This document shows, piece after piece, positions 24,049-64,000 of a stretch of 64,000 nucleotides of DNA. Origin of the DNA: Macrostomum hystrix (lineage: Eukaryota; Animalia; Platyhelminthes); assembly GCA_950097015.1 (NCBI GenBank), contig CATNEN010000010.1, positions 1,178,001-1,242,000 on the forward strand. The letters are read 5' to 3'. The translations under genes and the position numbers were made by a program. Numbering within the stretch: position 1 is the first letter of the stretch; the number at the start of each line of letters is the position of its first letter. The notes below the pieces were generated by a model. That model ran no database searches. It saw only the letters and a list, made by a program, of their open reading frames with translations, and had not been told where the DNA came from.

Positions 24049-26449
24049 CAAACCCAAGTCAAGCAGCGATTACTCACCCGTTCGTAGTTCCGTTTCACCA
24101 TCAGCCGGTGCCAGCGACTGTCGGCAAACTGCAGCGGATTGTCCTCAGCCGGCCGGATTGTCACATTGCGGCTAATCCGGTTAATGGACATGTCCAGGAA
24201 GAGGTTGCCATCGCGCAGGCTTAAGGCGATAAAATCCCGTCTGTCCTGACCCTCCGGAGGCTGACGGGCGGAGCCTGGGTGGGTTGAAGAGAAGGCGTTG
24301 AGGCGCTTCTCATCCGGACTGGAGCTCGGGTTGAGGTGTCAGGGGTTGAGGTGTCAGAGAGGGGCTCGGGTTGAGGTGTCAGGGGTTGAGGTGTCAGGGG
24401 TTGAGGTGTCAGGGGTTGAGGTGTCAGGGGTTGAGGTGTCAGGGGTTGAGGTGTCAGGGGTTGAGGTGTCAGGGGTTGAGGTGTCAGGGGTTGAGGTGTC
24501 AGGGGTTGAGGTGTCAGAGACTGAGGTGTCAGGGGTTGAGGTGTCAGGGCCCATTTCGCAAGATTCGAATGCGGCCTATCCAATTAGGTGACTCGAAAGT
24601 GAATCGGTATGACTGTCTATCTCAGCGAGCGCTAGTAAGCATTTGCCTCGGAGCAGATAGGCAAAATGCGCAGAACATAAACGCCAACGGCCGCTGCGCA
24701 GAAACAAGCCTTCGCTCCTGCTTCCATTCGCACCAACTTCCCCCAGCTCGCAGTTTCATCGCAGTCACGAACCCGAACTTCGTGGTTGATTTTTCGCGGC
24801 CAGCGGGACAGACGATGCAATAATGGTTTTCGGCTGTGGAAGTGGCACGCCCTGCTTGGGATTTCTCGCCCGGGATTCCGAGTTGATACTTTGCAGCTTT
24901 CAGGGATTCGATCATAAAAAAGTAGCGAAATTATCCCACAGCTCGGGTCCGGAGTGGGGGTGCCCGTCTTGCACGACCCTCGCCTCTCTTTCTTACTCTT
25001 CGATACTTTGAGAAATACTTTCCCTGCTCATAGAGTGGGGGAACTCAAAACCGCCTGTCTGGCCTGCTCACACTTCTCACACCCACCAACTCATTCCGGC
25101 GAGTTGCAGCAGCAGCAGCAATAACAACAGCAACAGCAGCAGCAGCAACGAAGGGAGGCCCGATGCCTTTACTGCCGCGCTTTCGTGCCGCTGTTTGAGC
25201 GATGCGTGGGGACTGCGGGCTGGCGGGATCTGCCAACCCGAACCCTCCGCGGCACCCTCCACTACCAGACTGAGGGGATCCGGGTAGAGGCTTAGAAGGC
25301 CCGACAGCTTCATCCCAAGTTTCCTGCCTCTGAAGCCCCGTCTCTCTTTCTGCCTTCTTTTCTCTTTCAGCTCAGTTTCTCTCGCCTCCCTTTTCTTCTC
25401 TTTTTCTTTGGCATTTTTCCCTTCGGGAGCTTTGGGCGCGTCTTGTTTGCCCAGCTGCTTCCTGTGGGACCTTCTGAGGCTTGCGGGCCGGGCGAGAGGA
25501 GGCAGAAAGTTCCCTTCATCTCCTGCTTTTTGCTAGATTTCCCGCCTTTCAGCTCTCGCCTTCCAGCTCTCGCCTTCCTGCTCTCGCCTTCCAGCTCTCG
25601 CCTTCCTGCTCTCGCCTTCCAGCTCTCGCCTTCCAGCTCTTGCCTTCCGGTTCTCGCCTCCGTTTCCCCGAGTCCCTGGCAACGCACCTGCGTAGATGAG
25701 GAAGGCCGACCTCTGCCTGGTCCTGTAGAGCAGGCTGATTGTGTCCGAATTGCCGTAGATGCCCAGCGCATCGGAGCCGAGGTCCAAGTAGATGAAGCCG
25801 CGGCCGTCAAACGTAGTCGGTGTCTCGTCGCGAACTGCGCATGAGGGGATGAGGAGGGAAAACTTTGCGGCTTGTTGCCGGTTGGCATGAAAGTCATTTT
25901 TTCAGTTCTTTCTTCCTTTGGCGCACCGTCATCAAACAAGGCCAGGCAAACACAGAGAGAGAGAGAGTTTGAAGGCGGTGCGGGGGAAAAAAGTAGCTCC
26001 GCACGCCAGGGGATAAAAGAATTGAAAAGGCCAGACAGAGACAGTCAGAAGCAGGGACAGCGAAGAGACGGCGGGGAAAGGAGCAGAGGAAAGTCTCTAA
26101 CACTCTCCTGGATGCTCAACGCATTAACGGAATTAATTCGAGGGGCGATTCCCCGCCGGGTGGCGGCTGATAAGGCCCACTCGCTTCCCCAACTCGTCCC
26201 TCGCATCCCATCTCGGCGGACACTTCCGCTAAGTCCACTCCTCTGAATGCCGCGTCGGTTTATTTCGCATTCTCAGCTCGGCTGTGCTCAAACTAAGCCT
26301 TCTAAACTTGAAAAATAAATATCCGTGTACGGGAAATCCCACGGCACCACAAGTTGGACTCGGCGCTTCCATCGCGGGTCTTGAATTATGGCCGGCCGAT
26401 TCCCAGACCGCACACAGACTCATCACTTTTCATATTTCAGTTCCCCCAG

Positions 26450-26490
<41 letters not shown>

Positions 26491-29400
26491 CGCCCTTGGG
26501 GATTTGAGGACCTAGTCCCCCGAAAAATACAAGCTGCTCGACACAGAGCGAGGGTCGACTGGCACAGAAAGTGCTCATGTGAGAAAGTAGCAGAAATTTT
26601 TTCCAGCCGGTTGGACTCAGAGGACTGGAAAAGTCAATCAGTTTGTCTGAGAAAGAGAATTTATATGGCGAATTTATGAATTGGCCAAGCAAACGGGAGG
26701 AAACAGATTTGCTGAGGTTTTTCTCTTGGAGACCACAGCAGCCCAAAGCAACTTTTTCTTAAAGACTTTTGTTATTCAATTAGGTTATGCGACAATGGCC
26801 ATCGACTGCAGCTAATTGAGGGCTCTGAGGCACAGAAAATATTTACTGAACATTTTGGATTTCTCTGATCTGCTGACTGCACCCTGCAAAACTCACCAGC
26901 CCTGCCTTCATCCCTGCTTTCATCCCTGCCTTCATCCCTGCTTTCATCCCTGCCTTCATCCCGGCTTTCATCCCTGCCTTCATCCCTGCCTTCATCCCTG
27001 CTTTCATCCCTGCTTTCATCCCTGCATTCATCCCTGCCTTCATCCCTGCTTTCATCCCTGCCTTCATCCCTGCTTTCATCCCTGCCTTCATCCCGGCTTT
27101 CATCCCTGCCTTCATCCCTGCCTTCATCCCTGCTTTCATCCCTGCTTTCATCCCTGCATTCATCCCTGCCTTCATCCCTGCTTTCATTCCTGCCTTCATC
27201 CCGGCTTTCATCCATGCCTTCATCCCTGCTTTCACCCCTGCTTTCATCCATGCTTTCATCCCTGCTTTCACCCCTGCTTTCATCCATGCTTTCATCCCTG
27301 CTTTCACCCCTGCTTTCATCCATGCTTTCATCCCTGCTTTCATCCCTGCTTTCATCCCTGCCTTCATCCCTGCCTTCATCCCTGCTTTCATCCCTGCTTT
27401 CATCCCTGCATTCATCCCTGCCTTCATCCCTGCTTTCATTCCTGCCTTCATCCCGGCTTTCATCCATGCTTTCATCCCTGCTTTCACCCCTGCTTTCATC
27501 CATGCTTTCATCCCTGCTTTCACCCCTGCTTTCATCCATGCTTTCATCCCTGCTTTCATCCCTGCTTTCATCCCTGCTTTCATCCCTGCTTTCATCCCAA
27601 ATCAAATAGCTTCCCAGTGTCTAATTGTATATCTCCCAGTGTCTCATTGTATATCTCCCAGTGTCTCATTGTATATCTCCCAGTGTCTCATTGTGTGTCT
27701 CCCAGTGTCTCATTGTATATCTCCCAGTGTCTCATTGTATATCTCCCAGTGTCTCATTGTATATCTCCCAGTGTCTCATTGTATATCTCCCAGTGTCTCA
27801 TTGTATATCTCCCAGTGTCTCATTGTGTGTCTCCCAGTGACTCATTGTGTTATCTCCCAGTGTCTCATAGTATATCTCCCAGTGTCTCATTGTGTGTCTC
27901 CCAGTGCGTATGTGCATATTTCAAATGAAGCTTCTATGAAACCATTATCGTATTCTCCAAAAACAGAGGGTCAGGTCTATTGGCTCATTAATTATCGCTG
28001 AGCAGTTTAGCAGGGCCTGTGCTCAGGTTTGTGCTCAAGTCTCAAAGCACAATGACTCGAGTTCCAAGTGAATCGCGGCCCCGAACTGACTGCCGCACAG
28101 TTTTATTGCAATTATAATTTTTTTTCTAAACTAAAAAGGAATCGGGAGTAAAAGGATTTTATCCAAATGTCGTCTAGAGACGGGGGTTGCTGCAGAGTCC
28201 GTGTATTTGGCCAGGACATCGTCAGAGATTGCATTATTCATTGGCTCTCTGAGCCGCCGCCTTACTGAGCCTTCAGTCCAAAATCAGTCAAATTGCTAGC
28301 TGAGTGAGGGCCCGACTGACTGCGGAGTCAGTTGCCACGGCTGCCGCCGGATGCAGGAGGAAGGGATGATTTTGGCTGAAACACTAACTGGGGAGCTCTG
28401 AGGCCAGGGCGGCCGCAGATATAAAGGGAAAAATTATCTGCTACAGCATGGCCAGAAAGTGATAAACAGGTGGAGAGGCCAATTGATGTGCGGCGATCAT
28501 TGGATGCACGGTTAAAGGAACAGAGGAGACTCACTGGGAGACTCAATGGGAGATTCACTGGGACACTCACTGGGAGACTCACTGGGAGATTCACTGGGAC
28601 ACTCACTGGGAGACTCACTGGGAGACTCGCTGTTAGACTCACTGGGAGACTCACTGGCAGACTCAATGGGAGACTCAATGGGAGACTCACTGGGAAACTC
28701 ACTGGGAGACTCACTGGGAGACTCACTGGGATACTCACTGGCAGACTCGATGGGAGACTCACTGGGAGATTCACTGGGATACTCACTGGGATACTCACTG
28801 GGAGACTCAATGGGAGACTCACTGGGAAACTCACTGGGATACTCACTGGGAGATTCACTGGGATACTCACTGGGATACTCACTGGGAGACTCACTGGGAT
28901 ACTCACTGGGATACTCACTGGGAGATTCACTGGGATACTCACTGGGATACTCACTGGGAGACTCACTGGGATACTCACTGGGATACTCACTGGGATACTC
29001 ACTGGGATACTCACTGGGAGATTCACTGGGAGATTCACTGGGAAACTCACTGGGAGACTCACTGGGAGACTCACTGGGAGACTCACTGGGAGACTCACTT
29101 GGAGACTCACTGGCAGACTCACTGTTAGACTCACTGGGATACTCACTGGGATACTCACTGGGATACTCACTGGGAGATTCACTGGGAGATTCACTGGGAA
29201 ACTCACTGGGAGACTCACTGGGAGACTCACTGGGAGACTCACTGGGAGACTCACTTGGAGACTCACTGGCAGACTCACTGTTAGACTCACTGGGATACTC
29301 AATGGTAGACTCAATGGGAGACTCAATGGGAGACTCAATGGGAGACTCAATGGTAGACTCAATGGGAGACTCAATGGTAGACTCACTGGGAGACTCACTG

Positions 29401-32400
29401 GGAGACTCACTTGGAGACTCACTGGCAGACTCACTGTTAGACTCACTGGGATACTCACTGGGATACTCACTGGGATACTCACTGGGAGATTCACTGGGAG
29501 ACTCACTGGGAAACTCACTGGGAGACTCACTGGGAGACTCACTGGGAGACTCACTGGGAGACTCACTTGGAGACTCACTGGCAGACTCACTGTTAGACTC
29601 ACTGGGATACTCAATGGTAGACTCAATGGGAGACTCAATGGGAGACTCAATGGGAGACTCAATGGTAGACTCAATGGGAGACTCAATGGGAGACTCAATG
29701 GGAGACTCAATGGGAGACTCACTGGGAAACTCACTGGGAGACTCACTGGGAGACTCACTGGGATACTCACTGGCAGACTCGATGGGAGACTCACTGGGAG
29801 ATTCACTGGGATACTCACTGGGATACTCACTGGGAGACTCAATGGGAGACTCACTGGGAAACTCACTGGGATACTCACTGGGAGATTCACTGGGATACTC
29901 ACTGGGATACTCACTGGGAGACTCACTGGGATACTCACTGGGATACTCACTGGGAGATTCACTGGGATACTCACTGGGATACTCACTGGGAGACTCACTG
30001 GGATACTCACTGGGATACTCACTGGGATACTCACTGGGATACTCACTGGGAGATTCACTGGGAGATTCACTGGGAAACTCACTGGGAGACTCACTGGGAG
30101 ACTCACTGGGAGACTCACTGGGAGACTCACTTGGAGACTCACTGGCAGACTCACTGTTAGACTCACTGGGATACTCACTGGGATACTCACTGGGATACTC
30201 ACTGGGAGATTCACTGGGAGATTCACTGGGAAACTCACTGGGAGACTCACTGGGAGACTCACTGGGAGACTCACTGGGAGACTCACTTGGAGACTCACTG
30301 GCAGACTCACTGTTAGACTCACTGGGATACTCAATGGTAGACTCAATGGGAGACTCAATGGGAGACTCAATGGGAGACTCAATGGTAGACTCAATGGGAG
30401 ACTCAATGGTAGACTCACTGGGAGACTCACTGGGAGACTCACTTGGAGACTCACTGGCAGACTCACTGTTAGACTCACTGGGATACTCACTGGGATACTC
30501 ACTGGGATACTCACTGGGAGATTCACTGGGAGACTCACTGGGAAACTCACTGGGAGACTCACTGGGAGACTCACTGGGAGACTCACTGGGAGACTCACTT
30601 GGAGACTCACTGGCAGACTCACTGTTAGACTCACTGGGATACTCAATGGTAGACTCAATGGGAGACTCAATGGGAGACTCAATGGGAGACTCAATGGTAG
30701 ACTCAATGGGAGACTCAATGGGAGACTCAATGGGAGACTCAATGGGAGACTCAATGGTAGACTCAATGGGAGACTCAATGGTAGACTCAATGGGAGACTC
30801 AATGGGAGACTCAATGGGAGACTCAATGGGAGACTCAATGGTAGACTCAATGGGAGACTCAATGGGAGACTCAATGGTAGACTCAATGGGAGACTCAATG
30901 GTAGACTCAATGGGAGACTCAATGGGATACTCACTTGGAGACTCAATGGGAGACTCACTGGGAGATTCACTGGGAGATTCACTGGGAAACTCACTGGGAG
31001 ACTCACTGGGAGACTCACTGGGAGACTCACTGGGAGACTCACTTGGAGACTCACTGGCAGACTCACTGTTAGACTCACTGGGATACTCAATGGTAGACTC
31101 AATGGGAGACTCAATGGGAGACTCAATGGGAGACTCAATGGGAGACTCAATGGGAGACTCAATGGGAGACTCAATGGTAGACTCAATGGGAGACTCAATG
31201 GTAGACTCAATGGTAGACTCAATGGGAGACTCAATGGGATACTCACTTGGAGACTCATTGGCAGACTCACTGGGAGACTCACTGGGATACTCAATGGAAT
31301 ACTCACTGGCAGACTCAATGGGAGACTCACTGGGAGATTCACTGGGAGACTCACTGGGAGACTCACTGGCAGACTCACTGATAGACTCACTGGTATACTC
31401 ACTGGGAGACTCAATGGGAGACTCACTGGGAGATTCACTTTTAGACTTACTGGGATACTCACTGGGAGACTCAATGGGATCCTCACTTGGAGACTCATTG
31501 GCAGACTCACTGGGAGACTCAATGGGATACTCACTTGGAGACTTACTGGGAGACTCACTGTGAGAACCCCTGGCAGGCACACTGAAAGACAATCGATAAC
31601 ACTGTGAGCAGCTGGTGTCATCGGTTCTGTTTATTCAGGCCAGTCTGCAGAAAGATAGTTGAAGCCCTAGCAGGTATCCCATAACACTGAGCGCGCAGTG
31701 TCTTCAAAATCTGGCGCAGCTCTCGCGCAGGTTCAGTTTTGGAGGAGAATCGTTTAACCCTGGCATCCCCTGAGCTTCGGCCCAAATCCCTCTAGCTGCT
31801 GGGCCGGATCGATTCCTCGCCCTGCCTGGGTGCCACCGGGGATTTCCCGCTACAGTCCCGCCTCTCAACGACCCATCCGCCCGCGATGTTTTAACTGTCA
31901 GATCCGGGGGCTGGCCCAGCTGCTACTGCCGCGCACTTTTAGCGGCAAATGAACTTCCACAACTTGTCTTGCTGGGAGAGCTGCGCTGCAATCCTTAGAT
32001 TGGGATTTATTTTGGGGAAAAATTAGTCTTTACTAGACATCTGTGAGGAGCTGCACCTGTCCCATTGTGTTTATGACGACTCCTTAGGTTGCAATGGGTG
32101 TGCAGATTGCACGCGTGAAGGATTGATTGATAACCCATAATGAGAGCGAAGTGGCGACAGTGTCAGCCTGACAGACTCAGTGACTGGCTCTCACGGATTC
32201 CAGGAAATCCTCTTGGCAAAAAAGAAAATCCCGACAAATGACTGGGAGATTCGCGCAATTCAGCATCCTCAAATTAGACGATAGCCGGGGCTGCCAGGTG
32301 CGGAGACGCGGGTACAATTAGCGAGCAAACAAACAGCGGGCCACAGTCTCCCGTACCAGACGCTGGGAAAGCACGGGAAGGATGGCCCAGCCAGCATCCC

Positions 32401-35400
32401 TGTCTGATAGATCCCCTGCAGGCCCGATCGCCATATGCCACTCCGTATGAAACTGGCAGTGGGGCAGCGCGGGAGTGACGGACGGGTCGGCCGCAGACAC
32501 TGCCCCTTCAAGAAGCAGAGGCAGCGGCAAGCAGAAATCGTTATGTCAAAAGCTCTTTGAGAAGCCAGCTGTGGGTTTCAATGAGTGAGGCAGACCCTTG
32601 CTCATTCTCAGTTGAGCTGACTGCCCAGCAACACCTCCTGCGCTGACAATGGGAACTCACTCCCTCCCAGAATAAAGAAAACATTTTATGGCACTTCTAG
32701 GAAAAAACTGCGCGGCTTTAACTGCCAGAACTGACGGCTTAAAGTGAATCTCCCAGTGAGTTTCCCAGCGAGTCTCCCATTGAGTCTCCCAGTGAGCCTC
32801 CCAGTGAGTATCCCAGTGAGTCTCCCAGCGAGTCTCCCAGTGAGTGTCCCAGTGAATCTCCCACTGAGTCTCCCAGTGAGTGTCCCAGTGAATCTCCCAG
32901 TGAGTCTCCCAGTGAGTCTCCCAGTGAGTGTCCCAGTGAATCTCCCAGTGAATCTCCCAGTGAGTGTCCCAGTGAATCTCCCAGAGAGTCTCCCAGTGAG
33001 TCTCCCAGTGAGTGTCCCAGTGAGTCTCCCAGTGAGTGTCCCAGTGAATCTCCCAGTGAGTCTCCCAGTGAGTCTCCCAGTGAGTATCCTATTGAGTCTC
33101 CCAGTGAGTTTCCCAGTGAGTCTCCCAGTGAGTGTCCCAGTGAGTCTCCCAGTGAGTCTCCCAGTGAGTCTCCCAGTGAGTGACCATCTGACTCAACTCA
33201 CCTGTTAAGGCTGCGGTCACAGATCCGATAAGAATGGCAGCGGCAAGCACAGCAGCGGGGCAGGAGTTCGGTCTCATGTCACTTCTCTCGTTTTGACATT
33301 TCTCGAATTTCAAAAGCAAACTTTAAAATTATAAGCTGGCTTCTGTATAAATTCTTTTTCACTTATCAAAACTATTTCTCTGTAGTGAAGTTGGTTAATA
33401 TGCGCGGGGCTTCCGTTCCTTATAGGGGGACATATCCTTTTTGGGGGGCCAGCTCGTGAGTGGCTCATTGATTCTCTAATTAACTGACCAATCCGATTGC
33501 GCCAGCGCTAGGCTAGTTCTCATTGGTTGGCTAACCGAAGCAGCAATTTTCTGTTAGATTTGCGTTAAACGCTCAGATTTTTTAGATCAGTTTTTTGTTG
33601 AATGGTTGCCTACGCAACCCATTCTATTCCTTTATGAATTGGATAGATTAGCAGCCCATTCGATTCCCTTATCAATTGGATAGATTAGCAATCCATTCTA
33701 TTCCTTTATCAATTGGATAGATTAGCAGCCCATTCGATTCCCTTATCAATTGGATAGATTAGCAATCCATTCTATTCCTTTATCAATTGGATAGATTAGC
33801 AGCCCATTCGATTCCCTTATCAATTGGATAGATTAGCAATCCATTCTATTCCTTTATCAATTGGATAGATTAGCAATCCATTCTATTCCTTCATCATTGG
33901 ATAGATTAGCAATCCATTCTATTCCTTTATGAATTGGATAGATTAGCAATCCATTCTATTCCTTTATCAATTGGATAGATTAGCAGCCCATTCGATTCCC
34001 TTATCAATTGGATAGATTAGCAATCCATTCTATTCCTTCATCATTGGATAGATTAGCAATCCATTCTATTTCTTTATCAGTTGGATAGATTAGCAACCCA
34101 TTCCATTTCTTTATCAATTAGATTTAAACCCCGATTTAATCCCATAGAACTGATTTGTTGCTATTTTTAGATAAAAATTGTGGAAACCCTAATTTGATCA
34201 CGTGCGATAAAGTTGTTGCTATTTTTAGATAGAAACATTAGGTAACCCCGATTTAATCACATAGGACTGATTTGTTGCTATTTTTAGATCAAAATTTATT
34301 GGAAACCCTGATTTAATCACATGCGATAAATTTGTTGCTATTTTTAGATAGAAACTTTGGGAAACCCTGATTTAATCACATAGGACTGATTTGTTGCTAT
34401 TTTTAGATCAAAATTTATTGGAAACCCTGATTTAAACACATGCGATAAATTTGTTGCTTTTTTAGATAGAAACTTTGGGAAACCCCGATTTAATCACCTG
34501 CGGCTGAGTTTTTGCCCCCGTATGCTATACAAATTTGCCCTTGAGACTATTCTATTATCTGTAAAACTAGAACACAAGCCTATTCAATTATCGGACCAAC
34601 AAGCCACACAAAATATTCTTAAACAGGAAGCAAATGATGAGTGTTCCGCAAGCCAGCCACCCGTTTAAACCCCGTCACTGTCACCATCCTGTCACCAAAG
34701 CCCAGTTCAGAAGTTGATTCATCATTATTTATTGCGTCAACTGACTGCAGCCACTTAAAGAGGGGAAGATGCTGACGTCACTGTTGTTTGCAAATCGCCG
34801 AAGTGGCAAATCGAAAACTTAACCTGCTTGTAGTTTCAGGCTTTCAGCAACAACAGACTGTACTGTGTGTTTTTGCTTGCCTCTCTTCTTCACTCCGAAT
34901 AAAAAAGTTGTACTTTTGAAGTCTCCTAAGTGCCAAAGCTTGTCCAGCCGAACTCCAGGTCATTGTTAGAGGTTAAGTGGACGGAATTCCACCCGATTCC
35001 AGTCCAGAAACACACCGCTTTGAATATAGTTTTTTTATTGTACAGCTAATCAACTACTCACTCTACTACTATCGTAAGTAGTAATGCGAGGTTGTTGAAG
35101 CAAGTTTATATAAATGCATTGTTAAAACATCGAATGCACTTTTCTTCTAAGCTGATGTCCTCTTTCAAGAACTTTATGGAACGAAAGCCAATTGGTGCCA
35201 GGGACAGTCAGTCATGGTTAAGAAAGATATTTACATCGCATTGCAGTGACAGCTGCTGACTGATGCCCAGATGGCCTGGCTGGTCAGCGGTTCAAGGGCT
35301 CTTGAAGGCCGCTCTATCAACGCCGGGGGGACATCCTGATGGCTGGCGATCGGCTCAGCTGCAGCGAAATTCTGCTGCCTATTCATTTTGACTTCTGGCT

Positions 35401-38400: not shown

Positions 38401-41400
38401 AATACACTTGGCGTAAAAATACATCAAAATTATCTATGCTTTGTCATTTCCTATTGGTTTTATTACTCGGAAATAAAAATAATGAGTACGCTTGTTCAGA
38501 CTACTCAAATTCTTGGAGCAGCTTTCTTGGGGGAGGAAATCCTAGGATCCTATTCACTGTCACAGCCTCAGCTCCTAGCTGAAGGATATTTTCTTTCTAA
38601 TTATTTCAACCAAAAAGGAATTCATTATCCCTCGCACAGCCAGGCATGGGGATAAACTGGAATCGGAATTGGATAATAAAAGAACTTGGTGCTTGTGCCA
38701 CTACAGATGGGATTAGACTAGCTGTCCTGGCTGCAAATCCCAGTCCTGGATTGGAAATCTTATTAAAGGTAAGCTGATTAACCTACAGTGGGACGGATTT
38801 CTTTGTGTCTGTTTTCAAAAGCAACTCGACTTTGTCTTGTGAAAAACTTCACCTCGACAAATTTACAAAGACCATTCTATTGCATAATGGAAAAATTGTT
38901 TTTCATGAATGGTCATTCTCGAGTGAAGGATCATGGGAGCGTGTATGAGTGAGACACTGAGGGTCATGGGAAGGTGTATGAGTGAGGCACTGAAGGCTCA
39001 TGGGAAGGTGTATGAGTGAGACACTGAGGGTCAGGGGAAGGTGTATGAGTGAGACACTGAGGGTCATGGGAAGGTGTATGAGTGAGGCACTGAAGGCTCA
39101 TGGGAAGGTGTATGAGTGAGGCACTGAAGGCTCATGGGAAGGTGTATGAGTGAGGCACTGAAGGATCATGGGAAGGTGTATGAGTGAGGCACTGAAGGAT
39201 CATGGGAAGGTGTATGAGTGAGGCACTGAAGGGTTATGGGAAGGTGTATGAGTGAGGCACTGAAGGGTTATGGGAAGGTGTATGAGTGAGACACTGAGGG
39301 TCATGGGAAGGTGTATGAGTGAGGCACTGAAGGGTTATGGGAGGGTGTATGAGTGAGACACTGAGGGTCATGGGAGGGTGTATGAGTGAGACACTGAGGG
39401 TCCTGGGAAGGTGTATGAGTGAGGCACTGAAGGCTCATGGGAAGGTGTATGAGTGAGACACTGAAGGATCATGGGAAGGTGTATGAGTGAGGCACTGAAG
39501 GATCATGGGAAGGTGTATGAGTGAGGCACTGAAGGCTCATGGGAAGGTGTATGAGTGAGACACTGAGGGTCATGGGAAGGTGTATGAGTGAGACACTGAG
39601 GGTCATGGGAAGGTGTATGATTGAGACACTGAGGGTCATGGGAAGGTGTATGAGTGAGACACTGAGGGTCATGGGAGGGTGTATGAGTGAGACACTGAAG
39701 GATCATGGGAAGGTGTATGAGTGAGACACTGAAGGATCATGGGAAGGTGTATGAGTGAGACACTGAAGGCTCATGGAAAGGTGTATGAGTGAGACACTGA
39801 AGGGTCATGTGAGGGTGTATGAGTGAGACACTGAAGGCTCATGGGAAGGTGTATGAGTGAGACACTGAGGGTCATGGGAAGGTGCATGAGTGAGGCACTG
39901 AAGGGTCATAGGAAGGTGTATGAGTGAGACACTGAGGGTCATGTGAGGGTGTATGAGTGAGACACTGAGGGTCATGGGAAGGTGTATGAGTGAGACACTG
40001 AGGGTCATGTGAGGGTGTATGAGTGAGACACTGAGGGTCATGGGAGGGTGTATGAGTGAGACACTGAGGGTCATGTGAGGGTGTATGAGTGAGACACTGA
40101 AGCAGCATTAGCAAGTTAAATTCCTTAAAAGCCAATTTCTAGGAACTGATTGATATTGCCATGGGACTCAATGTTTGCACCTTGAATTCACCTCACTAAT
40201 TATCATTGCAGAACCTGTATTGCCATGACAAGCTTAGCTAGCCAGGTCAGAGCATTATTATCCCAGCTGCAAGCGGTTGGCAGCAACTTCCGCAAGCTGT
40301 TTTGAAGTGTGTTTTGAGTTTCTTTTGTAATGAGCTTCGCATTCACAGCTGGCAGTGTGACCTCAGTGTCAGCCATCGCTCGTAACACGGCCTCTAGCAG
40401 GCTGAGATTTATCAAAAAACGAGCTTAATTACAATTTCACTGGTAATTAGCCGGATTCTGGGTCAGCTCAGGCACGAAACCTTCTTGGGTACACTGATCC
40501 CATTGAGGGACAGTTTTCGGAAGGGGAGTCAGATAAGATAGGGAACTAAATCTTTATCGCCCTGCAAATAAGCCGCGCAGCCCGGCCTATCAAAAATACC
40601 GGACAGTTAGGGGATGAAATCGAAGGCTCTGGTTGCTATGGGCCAAGTCCTGATGAGTCGAATGGCCCCAAGCGATAGCTTGTGTACAACCTGCCCATCA
40701 ATTATTGACTGCTTAGACAGCGGGTGGGGAGACCAGGTCGCGGCAAAGCTTTGAACAGTGCTTTGAGCCTCAAAGGCAGGTTTTAGGTCAGGGCAGATAA
40801 CAGACGGTTACCGACCATTGTTGCAATGTCTCTGATGAGCATTTTGGCCTTTTAATTGCTTCATTTTCTTCGTCCTTTTGATGTCAAAATTAAAAATGCT
40901 TAAAATATTTTTAGAAACAGGCAAAGGTGATTTCAGTTGACAAACACAATACCCACTCGCCTGTCCATCAAACTGTACTGAAACCCACTCGCCTGTCAAT
41001 CAAACTGTCTTGAAACCCACTCGCCTGTCAATCAAACTGTACTGAAACTCACTCGCCTGTCAATCAAACTGTCTTGAAACCCACTCGCCTGTCAATCAAA
41101 CTGTCTTGAAACCCACTCGCCTGTCAATCAAACTGTCTTGAAACTCACTCGCCTGTCAATCAAACGGTCTTGAAACCCACTCGCCTGTCAATCAAACTGT
41201 CTTGAAACCCACTCGCCTGTCAGTCAAACTGTCTTGAAACCCACTCGCCTGTCAATCAAACTGTACTGAAACTCACTCGCCTGTCCATCAAACTGTACTG
41301 AAACTCACTCGCCTGTCAATCAAACTGTACTGAAACTCACTCGCCTGTCAATCAAACTGTACTGAAACTCACTCGCCTGTCAATCAAACTGTACTGAAAC

Positions 41401-44400
41401 TCACTCGCCTGTCCATCAAACTGTATTGAAACTCACTCGCCTGTCAATCAAACTGTACTGAAACTCACTCGCCTGTCAATCAAACTGTACTGAAACTCAC
41501 TCGCCTGTCAATCAAACTGTCTTGAAACCCACTCGCCTGTCAATCAAACTGTACTGAAACTCACTCGCCTGTCAGTCAAACTGTACTGAAACTCACTCGC
41601 CTGTCAATCAAACTGTACTGAAACTCACTCGCCTGTCAATCAAACTGTACTGAAACCCACTCGCCTGTCAATCAAACTGTCTTGAAACCCACTCGCCTGT
41701 CAATCAAACGGTCTTAAAACCCACTCGCCTGTCAGTCAAACTGTCTTGAAACCCACTCGCCTGTCAATCAAACTGTACTGAAACCCACTCGCCTGTCAGT
41801 CAAACTGTCTTGAAACCCACTCGCCTGTCAATCAAACGGTCTTAAAACCCACTCGCCTGTCAATCAAACTGTACTGAAACTCACTCGCCTGTCCATCAAA
41901 CTGTATTGAAACTCACTCGCCTGTCCATCAAACTGTCTTGAAACCCACTCGCCTGTCCATCAAACTGTACTGAAACTCACTCGCCTGTCCATCAAACTGT
42001 ACTGAAACTCACTCGCCTGTCCATCAAACTGTATTGAAACTCACTCGCCTGTCAATCAAACTGTACTGAAACTCACTCGCCTGTCAGTCAAACTGTACTG
42101 AAACTCACTCGCCTGTCAATCAAACTGTACTGAAACTCACTCGCCTGTCAATCAAACTGTACTGAAACTCACTCGCCTGTCCATCAAACTGTCTTGAAAC
42201 CCACTCGCCTGTCCATCAAACTGTCTTGAAACTCACTCGCCTGTCAATCAAACGGTCTTAAAACCCACTCGCCTGTCAATCAAACGGTCTTAAAACCCAC
42301 TCGCCTGTCAATCAAACTGTACTGAAACCCACTCGCCTGTCAGTCAAACTGTCTTGAAACCCACTCGCCTGTCAATCAAACGGTCTTAAAACCCACTCGC
42401 CTGTAAATCAAACTGTACTGAAACCCACTCGCCTGTCAATCAAACGGTCTTAAAACCCACTCGCCTGTCAATCAAACTGTACTGAAACTCACTCGCCTGT
42501 CAATCAAACTGTACTGAAACTCACTCGCCTGTCAATCAAACTGTACTGAAACTCACTCGCCTGTCAATCAAACTGTACTGAAACTCACTCGCCTGTCAAT
42601 CAAACTGTACTGAAACTCACTCGCCTGTCCATCAAACTGTCTTGAAACCCACTCGCCTGTCCATCAAACTGTCTTGAAACCCACTCGCCTGTCCATCAAA
42701 CTGTATTGAAACTCACTCGCCTGTCAATCAAACTGTACTGAAACTCACTCGCCTGTCAATCAAACTGTACTGAAACTCACTCGCCTGTCAATCAAACTGT
42801 CTTGAAACCCACTCGCCTGTCAATCAAACTGTACTGAAACTCACTCGCCTGTCAGTCAAACTGTACTGAAACTCACTCGCCTGTCAATCAAACTGTACTG
42901 AAACTCACTCGCCTGTCAATCAAACTGTACTGAAACCCACTCGCCTGTCAATCAAACTGTCTTGAAACCCACTCGCCTGTCAATCAAACTGTACTGAAAC
43001 TCACTCGCCTGTCAATCAAACTGTACTGAAACTCACTCGCCTGTCAATCAGACTGTCTTGAAACCCACTCGCCTGTCAATCAAACGGTCTTAAAACCCAC
43101 TCGCCTGTCAGTCAAACTGTCTTGAAACCCACTCGCCTGTCAATCAAACTGTACTGAAACCCACTCGCCTGTCAGTCAAACTGTCTTGAAACCCACTCGC
43201 CTGTCAATCAAACGGTCTTAAAACCCACTCGCCTGTCAATCAAACTGTACTGAAACTCACTCGCCTGTCCATCAAACTGTATTGAAACTCACTCGCCTGT
43301 CAGTCAAACTGTACTGAAACCCACTCGCCTGTCAATCAAACTGTCTTGAAACCCACTCGCCTGTCAATCAAACGGTCTTAAAAGCCACTCGCCTGTCAGT
43401 CAAACTGTCTTGAAACCCACTCGCCTGTCAATCAAACTGTACTGAAACCCACTCGCCTGTCAGTCAAACTGTCTTGAAACCCACTCGCCTGTCAATCAAA
43501 CGGTCTTAAAACCCACTCGCCTGTCAATCAAACTGTACTGAAACTCACTCGCCTGTCCATCAAACTGTATTGAAACTCACTCGCCTGTCCATCAAACTGT
43601 CTTGAAACCCACTCGCCTGTCCATCAAACTGTACTGAAACTCACTCGCCTGTCCATCAAACTGTACTGAAACTCACTCGCCTGTCCATCAAACTGTATTG
43701 AAACTCACTCGCCTGTCAATCAAACTGTACTGAAACTCACTCGCCTGTCAGTCAAACTGTACTGAAACTCACTCGCCTGTCAATCAAACTGTACTGAAAC
43801 TCACTCGCCTGTCAATCAAACTGTACTGAAACTCACTCGCCTGTCAATCAAACTGTACTGAAACTCACTCGCCTGTCCATCAAACTGTACTGAAACTCAC
43901 TCGCCTGTCCATCAAACTGTCTTGAAACCCACTCGCCTGTCCATCAAACTGTCTTGAAACTCACTCGCCTGTCAATCAAACGGTCTTAAAACCCACTCGC
44001 CTGTCAATCAAACGGTCTTAAAACCCACTCGCCTGTCAATCAAACTGTACTGAAACCCACTCGCCTGTCAGTCAAACTGTCTTGAAACCCACTCGCCTGT
44101 CAATCAAACGGTCTTAAAACCCACTCGCCTGTAAATCAAACTGTACTGAAACCCACTCGCCTGTCAATCAAACGGTCTTAAAACCCACTCGCCTGTCAAT
44201 CAAACTGTACTGAAACTCACTCGCCTGTCAATCAAACTGTACTGAAACTCACTCGCCTGTCAATCAAACTGTACTGAAACTCACTCGCCTGTCAATCAAA
44301 CTGTACTGAAACTCACTCGCCTGTCAATCAAACTGTACTGAAACTCACTCGCCTGTCCATCAAACTGTATTGAAAACTCACTCGCCTGTCAATCAAACTG

Positions 44401-47400
44401 TACTGAAACTCACTCGCCTGTCAATCAAACTGTACTGAAACTCACTCGCCTGTCAATCAAACGGTCTTAAAACCCACTCGCCTGTCAATCAAACTGTACT
44501 GAAACTCACTCGCCTGTCCATCAAACTGTATTGAAACTCACTCGCCTGTCCATCAAACTGTCTTGAAACCCACTCGCCTGTCCATCAAACTGTACTGAAA
44601 CTCACTCGCCTGTCCATCAAACTGTACTGAAACTCACTCGCCTGTCCATCAAACTGTATTGAAACTCACTCGCCTGTCAATCAAACTGTACTGAAACTCA
44701 CTCGCCTGTCAATCAAACTGTACTGAAACTCACTCGCCTGTCAATCAAACTGTACTGAAACTCACTCGCCTGTCAATCAAACTGTACTGAAACTCACTCG
44801 CCTGTCAATCAAACTGTACTGAAACTCACTCGCCTGTCCATCAAACTGTACTGAAACTCACTCGCCTGTCCATCAAACTGTACTGAAACTCACTCGCCTG
44901 TCCATCAAACTGTCTTGAAACTCACTCGCCTGTCAATCAAACGGTCTTAAAACCCACTCGCCTGTCAATCAAACGGTCTTAAAACCCACTCGCCTGTCAA
45001 TCAAACTGTACTGAAACCCACTCGCCTGTCAGTCAAACTGTCTTGAAACCCACTCGCCTGTCAATCAAACGGTCTTAAAACCCACTCGCCTGTAAATCAA
45101 ACTGTACTGAAACCCACTCGCCTGTCAATCAAACGGTCTTAAAACCCACTCGCCTGTCAATCAAACTGTACTGAAACTCACTCGCCTGTCAATCAAACTG
45201 TACTGAAACTCACTCGCCTGTCAATCAAACTGTACTGAAACTCACTCGCCTGTCAATCAAACTGTACTGAAACTCACTCGCCTGTCAATCAAACTGTACT
45301 GAAACTCACTCGCCTGTCAATCAAACTGTACTGAAACTCACTCGCCTGTCAATCAAACTGTACTGAAACTCACTCGCCTGTCAATCAAACTGTACTGAAA
45401 CTCACTCGCCTGTCAATCAAACTGTACTGAAACTCACTCGCCTGTCAATCAAACTGTACTGAAACTCACTCGCCTGTCAATCAAACTGTCTTGAAACCCA
45501 CTCGCCTGTCCATCAAACTGTCTTGAAACTCACTCGCCTGTCAATCAAACTGTACTGAAACTCACTCCCCTGTCAATCAAACTGTACTGAAACTCACTCG
45601 CCTGTCAATCAAACTGTCTTGAAACCCACTCGCCTGTCAATCAAACTGTACTGAAACTCACTCGCCTGTCAGTCAAACTGTACTGAAACTCACTCGCCTG
45701 TTAATCAAACTGTACTGAAACTCACTCGCCTGTCAATCAAACTGTACTGAAACCCACTCGCCTGTCAATCAAACTGTCTTGAAACCCACTCGCCTGTCAA
45801 TCAAACGGTCTTAAAACCCACTCGCCTGTCATTCAAACTGTCTTGAAACCCACTCGCCTGTCAATCAAACTGTACTGAAACTCACTCACCTGTCAATCAA
45901 ACTGTACTGAAACTCACTCGCCTGTCAATCAAACTGTACTGAAACTCACTCGCCTGTCCATCAAACTGTACTGAAACTCACTCGCCTGTCCATCAAACTG
46001 TATTGAAACTCACTCGCCTGTCCATCAAACTGTCTTGAAACCCACTCGCCTGTCCATCAAACTGTCTTGAAACTCACTCGCCTGTCCATCAAACTGTACT
46101 GAAACTCACTCGCCTGTCAATCAAACTGTACTGAAACCCACTCGCCTGTCCATCAAACTGTATTGAAACTCACTCGCCTGTCAATCAAACTGTACTGAAA
46201 CTCACTCGCCTGTCAATCAAACTGTACTGAAACTCACTCGCCTGTCAATCAAACTGTACTGAAACTCACTCGCCTGTCAGTCAAACTGTCTTGAAACCCA
46301 CTCGCCTGTCAATCAAACTGTACTGAAACTCACTCGCCTGTCAATCAAACTGTACTGAAACTCACTCGCCTGTCAATCAAACTGTACTGAAACTCACTCG
46401 CCTGTCCAACAAACTGTATTGAAACTCACTCGCCTGTCCATCAAACTGTCTTGAAACCCACTCGCCTGTCCATCAAACTGTCTTGAAACTCACTCGCCTG
46501 TCCATCAAACTGTACTGAAACTCACTCGCCTGTCAATCAAACTGTACTGAAACCCACTCGCCTGTCCATCAAACTGTATTGAAACTCACTCGCCTGTCAA
46601 TCAAACTGTACTGAAACTCACTCGCCTGTCAATCAAACTGTACTGAAACTCACTCGCCTGTCAATCAAACTGTACTGAAACTCACTCGCCTGTCAGTCAA
46701 ACTGTCTTGAAACCCACTCGCCTGTCAATCAAACTGTACTGAAAGTAAGAGAGTGGGGAGTGGGGAGTGGAGAGTGGAGAGTGGAGAGTAAGAGAGTGGG
46801 GAGTGGAGAGTGGAGAGTAAGAGAGTGGGGAGTGGAGAGTGGAGAGTGGAGAGTAAGAGAGTGGGGAGTGGAGAGTGGAGAGTAAGAGAGTGGGGAGTGG
46901 AGAGTGGAGAGTAAGAGAGTGGGGAGTGGGGAGTGGAGAGTGGAGAGTAAGAGAGTGGGGAGTGGAGAGTGGAGAGTAAGAGAGTGGGGAGTGGGGAGTG
47001 GGGAGTGGAGAGTGGAGAGTGGGGAGTGGAGAGTGGAGAGTAAGAGAGTGGGGAGTGGGGAGTGGAGAGTGGAGAGTAAGAGAGTGGGGAGTGGAGAGTG
47101 GAGAGTAAGAGAGTGGGGAGTGGGGAGTGGGGAGTGGAGAGTGGAGAGTGGGGAGTGGAGAGTGGAGAGTAAGAGAGTGGGGAGTGGGGAGTGGAGAGTG
47201 GAGAGTAAGAGAGTTAGACTAGCAGGGTCAGGAAGTGGGGAGTTGGTGCGGGAATCAGGCGCAGCGCAGAAGCAGAGCGGAGGGGAGCCTGGAAATCCCA
47301 GCTTGAAATTCTGCGATAATCGTTTCTCCCCAATCCTTGGAGGAACTTTCCGTTGCGAAACGGGCAGGCAACCAAATCCGTTAAGAATTGGGATCTCGGC

Positions 47401-59667: not shown

Positions 59668-60408
59668 TCAATCGAACGGTGACAGACATTCAGCCACAGC
59701 GCCGTTGTAAAATGCCCAACTGGGATTGTCGCTGATAAATGGTAGCGCGTAGTACAGGGAGACCACATTCTCTGCTGAGCCATAGTTGTTTGGCTCGCCG
59801 TTCTGCCACAGGCTGCTGTTCATGATGATGCTGTTACCGCAGCTGGCCCAGATCCATCCGCCGGCGGGTTCCGGACTGCCCGGAGGCTGGAATCCGCCAA
59901 GCAGCAACATAGTCCAGCCGTTATTGAAAAATGAGAACACGTGGTTTAGCTCGCTCGCGCTGTCAAGATCGGCCATGATGACGAGGCCCGGCTGGCTCTC
60001 GATGTCACTCTTGATCTGGTTCCAGCTGCTGATGCTGCTGAACACTTTGTACTTGGTGCCGCAGAAGTCGTTGGCGAAGCCGCTGGGGCACAGGCTGGCT
60101 CCGGGCTGCACGCCGGCCGGCTTCCTCTTCATGAACAGGCGGCCCCGACGGCTGCAGCTGCAGTCGCGGACGAACTTGCTGCATTTGTCGAACACGAACA
60201 GCTGGCAGGGTCCGTCAGCCACGCTGAAGGCCTGGCAGCGCCAGTTCTCATTGCAGAGGAAGGCGCAGTGACGCTCGGAGGCCACTTCGAGGCGCGTCTC
60301 TGTAAACTGGGCACGCACGCAGAGGAAGCCGTTGTCCACGGTGGCGAAGTCCTGCGCCAGAGTCGTGGCGAGAACGGCGATCAGGACAGTCGAGAGGCAG
60401 ATCTTCAT
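59668..60408 (-). CDS. Secreted PAN/apple + C-type lectin domain protein, single exon, 246 aa
   Basis: Start context gccgtcATG; signal peptide MKICLSTVLIAVLATTLA; PAN pattern HCAFLCNENWRCQAFS...CQL; CTLD features CPSGF, W-x6, LLGG and WQNGEPNNYGSAEN (EPN motif); GC-rich codon usage like the neurexin exons. Confidence 0.88.
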   Translation of the reverse strand: MKICLSTVLIAVLATTLAQDFATVDNGFLCVRAQFTETRLEVASERHCAFLCNENWRCQAFSVADGPCQLFVFDKCSKFVRDCSCSRRGRLFMKRKPAGVQPGASLCPSGFANDFCGTKYKVFSSISSWNQIKSDIESQPGLVIMADLDSASELNHVFSFFNNGWTMLLLGGFQPPGSPEPAGGWIWASCGNSIIMNSSLWQNGEPNNYGSAENVVSLYYALPFISDNPSWAFYNGAVAECLSPFD

Positions 60409-62113: not shown

Positions 62114-62899
62114 TTACTCATTTGGCGTCTCGTCAAGAATGATGGATTTCATTGTTGTTGGATTGTCAGCAGAAATCGCCTTCTCAATTCTGGTCTTCAT
62201 CACGTCTACGTACCGCACACCGTCATACTCTTTGATTTGCAGGTCTCTCTTGCTCAATCCACGCAACCATTTACGTCCTCTAAAACCGAAACCATACACG
62301 ATCTTAAAAAGCACTTCCATCTGCAGCCGCGTCGAAGTCGACCGGTCAAAGTACGAGCGCAAGCGCACGAAGTCGTAATACTCAATCGGACAGTAGGTAC
62401 TAGCACCTGCTAGTTTCTTCTCCTTATGAGCAGCAGACAAGCACGCCTTAAACGATGCAAACAGTTCGTTTCCAATGATCGTGAGATCCATTCTCTCGGA
62501 AATGAAGCGATGAATCGACGCTCGGAAGCAAACTAGAGAACGAACGGCGTAGGATTTGCCATCGGCCATCTTTAGCGACACAAACCATAGCCTGAGGTAT
62601 GCGCACAGATAACGCACGGGGATACTCTCGATGTTTTCCGGCAACTTTTGGTCAGGCAAGAAATTCTTTAGTCGTTTCACGTGCACTTTCATTTGCTTAA
62701 CGGTCGACTCACGCATCGCTTCATCTTCCACACGCCGCAGATCGCTCTCCTCAGTCTCACTGAGCTCTCGCAGAAGTGATGCATCATCTATCTCAGACGG
62801 ATTTTCCAGCTCGGCATCTATCAGTCTCTGATGCGCAGCCGTCAAGCCAGACCATTGACTAATCGCTTGATCTGGTTCGCGACGTCCAAGGCGCGTCAA
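62114..62899 (-). mobile_element. Crypton (CryptonA/DUF3504-type) tyrosine recombinase, N-terminal two-thirds, truncated (copy B)
   Basis: RESTVKQMKVHVKRLKNFL..NIESIPVRYLCAYLRLWFVSLKMADGKSYAVRSLVCFRASIHRFI and LRSYFDRSTSTRLQMEVLFKIVYGFGFRGRKWLRGL match the CryptonA/KCTD1/ZMYM YR pattern, including the first catalytic Arg. The HxxR, H and Y region is absent. The track's start codon is not an ATG. Confidence 0.8.
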
Positions 62900-63379
62900 A
62901 AAAATCTAGCTTATCAGAGCTTAGATCGCTAATATCGTCCTCTAGTATTGAATCGTAATCCAACATGTCGACGCAGTAAAAAGAATAGATGGCTAAACAA
63001 CACTCTTTATTACTAAAGAATGTATTTTCTCGCAAGAGCTTGAAAGTAATCCTTGTACAACGCTCGAGCGTGCAGATAACACCTATGTCTATGTTAAAAT
63101 CCTATAGTCAATCTATTCAAAAAGCGTGCTGATCAAGGACAACTTAATAACTCTCGTTATTAAGTTAGTTATTAAGTTATTAAGTTATTAAGTTTTCCTT
63201 GGTGCTGATAATAAAGAAACGTGCAGATAATTTATGTCCATGGCAAAGCTTTAACATGGTTTATCAGTGTATATATTTTAAGTAACAACAACAGCCGAAA
63301 CAACAGTACAGCAAAGAACTGTATGAGAGGCCTGCGTCACTTTCGCAGTATTGTTCATTTTAAAGTAGATGTAAAAATG

Positions 63380-64000
63380 TTATTTCGGCAAATTAAAGGT
63401 GCACCTTCTCACGTTTCCATTAAAGTTGAGTGTCAAGGTGACCTGTCGTGGCTCGGCATGGTTGCCGCTGTTAGCCACAGCGCGCTCTGCTGGCATAGAC
63501 GTCTCCATTTGATTTGTGTCGCCCATGGATGAGTTAGCTCCATGCAGCGATGAATGCAGTGCGCTGCACATGGCCCGCATCTCGGATGTGCGTCGAATTC
63601 CGAATTGCAGGTACCGTTCGACTGTTTTCACCTGCTTGTGACCAGTCACCTTACAGATATCGGCATTCGAGTAACCAGCATCAGACAGCTCCTTGATGAC
63701 AGTCGGACGGACACAATGGGCCGTGTAGCGCTTGCTGAAACTGGCAGCCTCCAATATCTTGGTCATCATGGTTGCTAGGGTGTTCACACCAAGCGCTTGC
63801 GAAGCGCAATACCAGTTCGAGTTCTTCCACCTGGTCGTTTTTGGTTTCAATAAAAACTGTGCAGTGCACGTTGAAGCCGAACTTCCAGGCAAAGACTCGC
63901 GCCGTTCGTGCCTACATTCTTGACTTTGCCAGCCAACAGGCGCACTGCTTGCTTACCATCCGACATCGTCTCAAACACCAAGCTGTCTTCCTTCAGGTCC
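63380..64000 (-). mobile_element. Second Crypton tyrosine recombinase, C-terminal catalytic half, 5'-partial (copy A)
   Basis: NWYCASQALGVNTLATMMTKILEAASFSKRYTAHCVRPTVIKELSDAGYSNADICKVTGHKQVKTVERY carries HxxR, GHK and the Tyr nucleophile. An upstream segment DLKEDSLVFETMSDGKQAVRLLAGKVKN (63999-63916) lies in another frame. Confidence 0.82.

Follow-up and report, generated by a model that had tools for sequence, protein, structure and literature searches.

Neurexins are central organisers of synapses. Their diversity is thought to arise from alpha, beta and gamma starts together with splicing, and a 2025 review assigns alpha and beta forms to mammals and alpha and gamma forms to invertebrates (PMC12665717). 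In vertebrate beta-neurexin, an alternative first exon located within the large alpha intron provides its own signal peptide and joins a common exon in frame, with the same transmembrane segment and tail as the alpha form (PMC12665717). The join falls just before LNS6, dropping five LNS and three EGF domains and adding a beta-specific stretch. The gamma-neurexins (the short form of C. elegans and Drosophila, and mammalian Nrxn1-gamma), which are without any LNS or EGF domain, offer an invertebrate precedent for a second 5' end in a single neurexin gene (PMC12665717). A 2024 study has also described neurexins with fewer than six LNS domains, as the alpha-like four- and five-LNS proteins of early-branching animals and as cnidarian delta and epsilon, but these are the products of separate genes and not isoforms made from a second start (PMC11294457). 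Here we describe a 76-nucleotide (nt) open reading frame (ORF) in the first intron of an alpha-type neurexin gene of the flatworm Macrostomum hystrix, which is probably a real alternative first coding exon that evolution has maintained. The predicted form leads from its own signal peptide into LNS2 to LNS6 and the transmembrane segment. The gene is read on the minus strand of a 64,000-nt stretch of contig CATNEN010000010.1, which we call the window and to which all coordinates refer unless another locus is named.

The original prediction had proposed a hidden first exon deep within the long first intron of this gene, with an ATG at 33277, 25 codons, a CAG|GTGAGT donor at 33202|33201 in phase 1 and a join to exon 2 at 25834, and all of these positions were verified on the minus strand. 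The exons and the intron concerned are as follows.

33202 to 33277, minus strand: candidate alternative first coding exon of 76 nt, with its ATG at 33277-33275, 25 codons plus 1 nt, phase 1 and a signal-peptide-like product (from direct reading, the chance tests and the M. lignano counterpart, all described below).
33196 to 33201, minus strand: splice donor GTGAGT (CAG|GTGAGT including the exon side), scoring 8.2 bits on a generic metazoan matrix, a figure not to be over-read because, through their exon sides, this matrix underrates the true exon 1 donors of both Macrostomum species compared here, which score just 1.6-1.9 bits.
53228 to 54080, minus strand: alpha-type exon 1, encoding a signal peptide, LNS1 and EGF1 (Pfam), with the donor GGA|GTGAGT in phase 1; 62-64% identical to the LNS1-EGF1 exon of M. 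lignano.
25835 to 53227, minus strand: first intron of the alpha transcript (27,393 nt, mostly minisatellites), in which the alternative exon lies 19.95 kb downstream of the 5' end; colinear with the 17.3-kb intron 1 of M. lignano.
25688 to 25834, minus strand: exon 2, 147 nt, phase 1 to phase 1, the first LNS2 exon, whose acceptor is common to exon 1 and the alternative exon.

Judged by a heuristic filter, the peptide encoded by the alternative exon resembles a signal peptide: its n-region contains Arg, its hydrophobic core spans 13 residues (Kyte-Doolittle mean of the best 10-mer, 2.98), and the -3 and -1 positions hold small residues (V20 and A22). When spliced computationally, its phase 1 donor meets the phase 1 acceptor of exon 2, which is pyrimidine-rich and ends in ...gcgcag, and translation continues without interruption; the reading frame is kept because the alternative exon and exon 1 both terminate in phase 1.

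The evidence that carries this reading comes from a second species, Macrostomum lignano. An exhaustive profile search, in which the LNS3-EGF2 exon was compared with 1.84 billion representatives, returned the M. lignano protein PAA86589.1 as the closest match at 70% identity, with the following matches at 44% or less. This protein (BOX15_Mlig002077g3, annotated as 'hypothetical protein'; UniRef A0A267GMS1) opens with a 25-residue signal peptide fused directly to exon 2 sequence, and its cluster mate PAA54791.1 carries the alpha join, in which exon 1 leads straight to exon 2. Two copies of the corresponding exon were located in M. lignano, one at the locus of PAA86589.1 (L001) and one at a second copy that is 94-99% identical to it (L002).

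L001, 10001 to 10076: M. lignano signal-peptide exon, copy 1, 76 nt, phase 1, ending AAATC|GTGAGT, with exon 2 from 16609, 6.5 kb downstream.
L002, 23039 to 23114: M. lignano signal-peptide exon, copy 2, 12.7 kb downstream of the LNS1-EGF1 exon (end 10312, AAATC|GTGAGA), with exon 2 from 27601, 4.5 kb further.

The order of exons in L002 (LNS1-EGF1 exon, signal-peptide exon, exon 2) places the M. lignano exon, too, inside intron 1 of an alpha-type gene. PAA86589.1 offers an orthologous or paralogous 76-nt signal-peptide exon in phase 1 with the same GTGAGT donor and the same exon 2, and its flanks hold the same arrays and CCAAT box, to which we return below. RNA-seq data underlie the M. lignano annotation, for which StringTie and TACO were run on STAR mappings and a de novo transcriptome and TransDecoder were also used (PMC5730564), so that the junction between this first exon and exon 2 is transcript-derived rather than an ab initio call. 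The proposed splicing of a second signal-peptide exon to exon 2 is thus backed by an orthologous exon that stands first in an RNA-seq-derived model; transcription and the splice junction are documented in M. lignano only, by way of its annotation, and the exon is presumably used in the M. hystrix genome as well. As a side observation, the alpha exon 1 and the alternative exon of L002 (10305-10318 and 23107-23120) both end AAATC|GTGAG, so that both M. lignano forms read Asn-Leu over the junction, whereas the two exons of the window end AGGA| and ACAG|. In a third M. lignano model of the gene family, PAA58033.1 (512 aa), translation begins from an internal Met close to where LNS5 ends, and no signal peptide is present. 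This model probably reflects a transcript truncated at the 5' end and not a beta-like form.

The two exons have diverged widely in sequence. In a gapless codon alignment of the window with M. lignano, 37 of the 76 nt are identical (49%), spread evenly over the codon positions, as are 8 of the 25 residues. What both species have kept is the ATG, the exact length, the open frame, an Arg in the n-region, the Ala/Leu/Ile core, the motif S19-V20-x-A22, which is the best -3/-1 cleavage context in each, and the GTGAGT donor. When unconstrained substitution was simulated at 50% divergence, this full set of features survived in about 4e-5 of trials (simulated joint rate 5e-5), and a looser estimate by hand put the same survival at about 1e-3 at most. 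A sequence free to change within a fixed physical profile is what functional signal peptides usually show, and the alpha signal peptide is likewise unalignable between the two species. A single synonymous change separates the exon sequences of the two M. lignano copies. Conservation in a related flatworm, which had been put forward as a check on the exon, was therefore found in the form of an exon at a colinear place in both M. lignano copies, with equal length and phase and a GTGAGT donor.

We also asked how readily such an exon arises by chance. All ATG-initiated open stretches of 15-60 codons ending at a donor of at least 4 bits were enumerated and then passed through a signal-peptide filter, which required an n-region of non-negative charge, a hydrophobic core free of charged residues, 8 or more residues long and averaging 2 or more on the Kyte-Doolittle scale, and small residues at -3 and -1. 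Across both strands of the 64-kb window (128 kb of strand sequence), the alternative exon was the sole candidate to pass both the donor and the signal-peptide filter. When donors were defined by a plain GTRAG rule, intron 1 still held no other signal-peptide-like phase-1 candidate, and a single such candidate was likewise found in intron 1 of M. lignano. Among 300 dinucleotide shuffles of the intron, 3% yielded at least one phase-1 signal-peptide-like candidate. Taken by themselves, apart from the comparative data, uniqueness and the shuffle result are suggestive but not decisive.

The domain order of the host gene is that of an alpha-neurexin ectodomain. Its Laminin_G and EGF matches follow the order signal peptide-LNS1-EGF1-LNS2-LNS3-EGF2-LNS4-LNS5-EGF3-LNS6 as far as the window extends. 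In the M. lignano ortholog PAA54791.1 we found five Laminin_G stretches and a partial LNS1, together with EGF, and its top matches in the PDB are to neurexin-1alpha, aligned from LNS2 on. The same protein has a Pfam Syndecan match at 1345-1380 and the C-terminus ...KKRDIKEWYV; the 3' end of the window gene itself lies outside the window. The remaining coding sequence was placed as follows.

699 to 24281, minus strand: common downstream exons from LNS2 to about EGF3, from tblastn of M. lignano PAA54791.1 and Pfam Laminin_G/EGF matches; the gene runs on past the start of the window.
24281-24051, 18950-18786, 13134-12763, 12614-12099, 9417-9190, 5232-5038, 2251-1919, 1637-1257 and 947-699, minus strand: approximate tblastn blocks of these exons, with PAA54791.1 as query.

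Exon 2 begins where LNS2 begins. Through the M. lignano ortholog, its first full codon (ortholog residue 27) aligns with residue 229 of the neurexin-1alpha chains 3R05 and 3QCW; in the LNS2 construct 2H0B the aligned residue is 3, and in the LNS2-LNS6 construct 3POY it is 5. The join had been assigned to the boundary between EGF1 and LNS2, and it does fall where LNS2 starts in the crystallised constructs. Transcripts starting at or just upstream of the alternative exon would splice from the donor at 33202 to the ordinary exon 2 acceptor at 25834. Cleavage is predicted after residue 22, at the conserved S-V-x-A motif, so the mature form would consist of about 4 residues followed by LNS2-LNS3-EGF2-LNS4-LNS5-EGF3-LNS6, a stalk, the transmembrane segment and the tail. 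Because its own signal peptide leads straight into LNS2, the product would be without LNS1 and EGF1. Both the cleavage of the signal peptide and any functional difference from the alpha form are predictions drawn from the sequence. In the ESM Atlas, ortholog residues 1-230 resemble secreted proteins such as SHBG, in matches with only Laminin G domains; this was taken as suggestive only and not used as evidence.

How does such a form compare with those already described? The Macrostomum exon shares its general arrangement with beta-neurexin, yet it joins before LNS2 rather than LNS6, drops LNS1-EGF1 only and adds almost nothing beyond a signal peptide, and no sequence homology with the beta exons is seen or would be expected. 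Since the join lies at the start of LNS2, the form is not beta-neurexin proper. Unlike gamma-neurexin, it would retain five of the six LNS domains. The predicted natural form corresponds to the part of the ectodomain contained in the 3POY construct of LNS2-LNS6, one of the crystallised neurexin-1alpha LNS2-LNS6 cores (3POY, 3QCW, 3R05) whose N-terminus lies within about 4 residues of the predicted mature start, although those structures are of engineered mammalian fragments and not of natural isoforms. Our searches of the literature returned alpha, beta, gamma, delta and epsilon forms, and none that starts at LNS2. The remark in the original prediction that such a form had not been described agrees with these searches, but the form was already to be found among the public M. 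lignano gene models, under the label 'hypothetical protein' and without a name of its own.

The sequence around the alternative exon bears on how a second 5' end might arise. The exon lies in a 432-nt unique island flanked by two tandem arrays, and the elements of this region are as follows.

33278 to 33613, minus strand: 336 nt of unique sequence from the upstream satellite to the ATG, a candidate promoter and 5' untranslated region or, alternatively, a trans-splice acceptor site; single copy in the window, with a weak colinear alignment to M. lignano.
33522 to 33526, minus strand: CCAAT box (GCCAACCAATGAG), 249 nt upstream of the ATG of the alternative exon and 88 nt downstream of the satellite.
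33279 to 33299, minus strand: upstream ORF, MSKREK-stop, which terminates 1 nt ahead of the main ATG and is relevant only with a 5' end further upstream.
33614 to 34123, minus strand: 37-nt tandem array of 13.8 copies with the 24-nt core GGAATAGAATGGATTGCTAATCTA, immediately upstream of the candidate promoter.
32743 to 33181, minus strand: 12-nt satellite, reading GGGAGACTCACT on the gene strand and starting 20 nt past the donor of the alternative exon.

The possibility that the island is a mobile element or repeat was rejected, as the 432-nt segment has no further copy in the window. A search of Rfam matched no family anywhere in the window.

Much of this arrangement recurs in M. lignano. There, a CCAAT box (GTCAGCCAATCAG) lies 243 nt upstream of the ATG and 84 nt past the satellite, a 40-nt array with an identical 24-nt core occupies the matching upstream position, and a related 12-nt array (CTGGGAGACACA) follows the exon downstream, while the remaining unique flank is about 50% identical and colinear. 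The TATA-like motifs TATAAGG in the window and GATAAAGG in M. lignano were not counted as conserved because their distances to the CCAAT box and to the ATG differ between the species. We suggest that the alternative exon may have its own promoter, about 150-250 nt upstream and marked by the conserved CCAAT box; provided that the exon is genuine, an independent promoter of this kind has somewhat better than even chances in our estimate.

The same exon and isoform could also be produced with no separate promoter, if the alpha pre-mRNA were trans-spliced to a spliced leader at an acceptor just upstream of ATG 33277. One primary transcript would then give rise either to the alpha form (exon 1 to exon 2) or to the LNS2-start form (spliced leader to alternative exon to exon 2). 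Trans-splicing is widespread in M. lignano, where it affects 38.8% of genes and where about 7% of transcriptional units have several trans-splice sites (PMC5730564). An AG follows T-rich stretches upstream of the ATG in both species (...tttgcttttgaaattcgag in the window; ...ctatcag and ...ctattag in M. lignano), and an acceptor near the ATG would have the further effect of eliminating the upstream ORFs. Conservation of the CCAAT box in both sequence and spacing (-249 and -243), with the same array 84-88 nt upstream of it, is nevertheless a better fit to a promoter, and we consider trans-splicing unlikely to be the source of this 5' end.

Alternatively, the exon might be weakly transcribed but idle, so that intronic noise or an unproductive transcript was assembled by the M. 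lignano pipeline and no stable LNS2-start protein is made. Several points weigh against a maintained exon, and three of them (the single model, the upstream ORFs and the missing N-terminal fragments) also speak for an idle transcript. Support at the transcript level comes from one M. lignano model, whose 3' end reads into an intron (687 aa, with a junk tail), and PAA86589.1 could reflect a rare or immature transcript. StringTie is able to begin models at intronic noise. Both species have short ORFs ahead of the ATG, which in M. lignano lie within about 125 nt of it. Fragments with the new N-terminus were absent from the protein collections searched: in word-indexed protein searches, whose length limits weaken each of these blanks, PAA86589.1 residues 1-110 returned a self-match only, its residues 1-150 no match, and PAA54791.1 residues 60-260 only distant cadherin-type proteins, and neither an M. 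hystrix protein nor a third species was reached. Furthermore, the signal-peptide call is a heuristic one, the uncharged stretch of 22 residues is long, and the comparison spans two lineages of a single genus. Noise would, however, leave unexplained why the ATG, frame, length, hydrophobic profile, S-V-x-A motif and donor have all been retained although half of the nucleotides have changed, and why intron 1 of each species holds a single such candidate; an idle transcript accordingly seems to us quite improbable.

An internal cassette exon between exon 1 and exon 2 was rejected as less likely, because PAA86589.1 starts at an ATG and is not flagged as partial and because exon 1 leads directly into exon 2 in the alpha model. 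Finally, that the ORF is a product of chance beside a minisatellite, its GTGAGT coming from the 12-nt repeat (AGTGAGTCTCCC on the complementary strand) and its Ala/Leu-rich peptide from the local G+C-rich composition, is barely credible, for although the donor lies 20 nt from a satellite with GTGAGT on the opposite strand, and short hydrophobic ORFs are frequent in this repeat-rich intron, the repeat does not read GTGAGT on the gene strand, shuffles produce such a candidate in 3% of trials only, and chance cannot account for an orthologous, RNA-annotated M. lignano exon of equal length and phase.

The arrays of intron 1 merit description in their own right. Comparison by blastn of intron 1 in the window (25835-53227) and in L002 (10313-27600) revealed that nearly all of the alignable non-coding sequence consists of arrays, which occur in the same order (12-, 32-, 37/40- and 12-nt) and are 67-81% identical, and that unique intron 1 sequence can barely be aligned between the two species; the arrays thus seem to outlast unique sequence in this intron. 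Arrays with the 24-nt core occupy 33614-34123 in the window, 21985-22713 in L002 and about 9000-9680 in L001. This core is letter-perfect in 8 of the 13 copies listed for the window and in 14 of 17 in L002, with no occurrence outside its array in either, whereas the rest of the unit differs (37 vs 40 nt). Constraint on one part of a repeat unit suggests that this may be an array of binding sites rather than a drifting satellite.

A 32-nt array is likewise conserved in position, at 40954-46744 in the window, 16748-17286 in L002 and about 3770-4720 in L001. Its core TGATTGACAGGC contains TGATTGACAG, a frequent PREP1-PBX1 decamer (PMC5240567). The array is about tenfold longer in the window than in L002 (5.8 kb vs 0.5 kb), and its 12-nt core is present in 113 exact copies in the window (181 units) as against 11 in L002 and 25 in L001. 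The 12-nt satellite (GGAGACTCACTG or its complement) is present twice in intron 1 of the window, in opposite orientations, once 3 kb downstream (28525-31565) and once right after the alternative exon (32743-33181). The longer of these (28525-31565) reads CAGTGAGTCTCC on the gene strand and thereby provides about 250 intronic GTGAGT donor-like sites.

These arrays raise the possibility of a regulated two-start system, in which the conserved 24-nt-core arrays (13-18 copies) and the 32-nt arrays with TGATTGACAGGC/TGATTGACAG might act as multi-site enhancers that set the choice between the alpha start and the LNS2 start or, alternatively, the second start might be made by intronic spliced-leader trans-splicing. 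We put this forward tentatively and think the odds are against it; if the second 5' end were indeed made by intronic spliced-leader trans-splicing, it would represent a new route to receptor N-terminal isoforms.

Upstream of the neurexin gene, the window holds an ORF of 246 aa (59668-60408, minus strand) that is intronless, carries a signal peptide and is rich in Cys, for which a PAN-CTLD label comes from an earlier note only, and two more ORFs of 261 and 170 aa (62114-63892, minus strand), labelled as tyrosine recombinases, again in an earlier note only.

M. lignano is ready for transgenesis, and upstream fragments of 2 kb or less were enough for tissue-specific reporters in the genes tested (PMC5730564), so that promoter reporters and isoform-specific knock-downs are directly feasible. 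Work in other animals implicates the LNS1-EGF1 head in the binding of IgSF21 and, jointly with LNS5, of the calcium-channel subunit alpha2delta-3 (PMC12665717). If the reading favoured here, of a maintained alternative first exon, is correct, a conserved start that removes LNS1-EGF1 only would constitute a fourth kind of neurexin start, and would offer a natural experiment on what this flexibly tethered head does.

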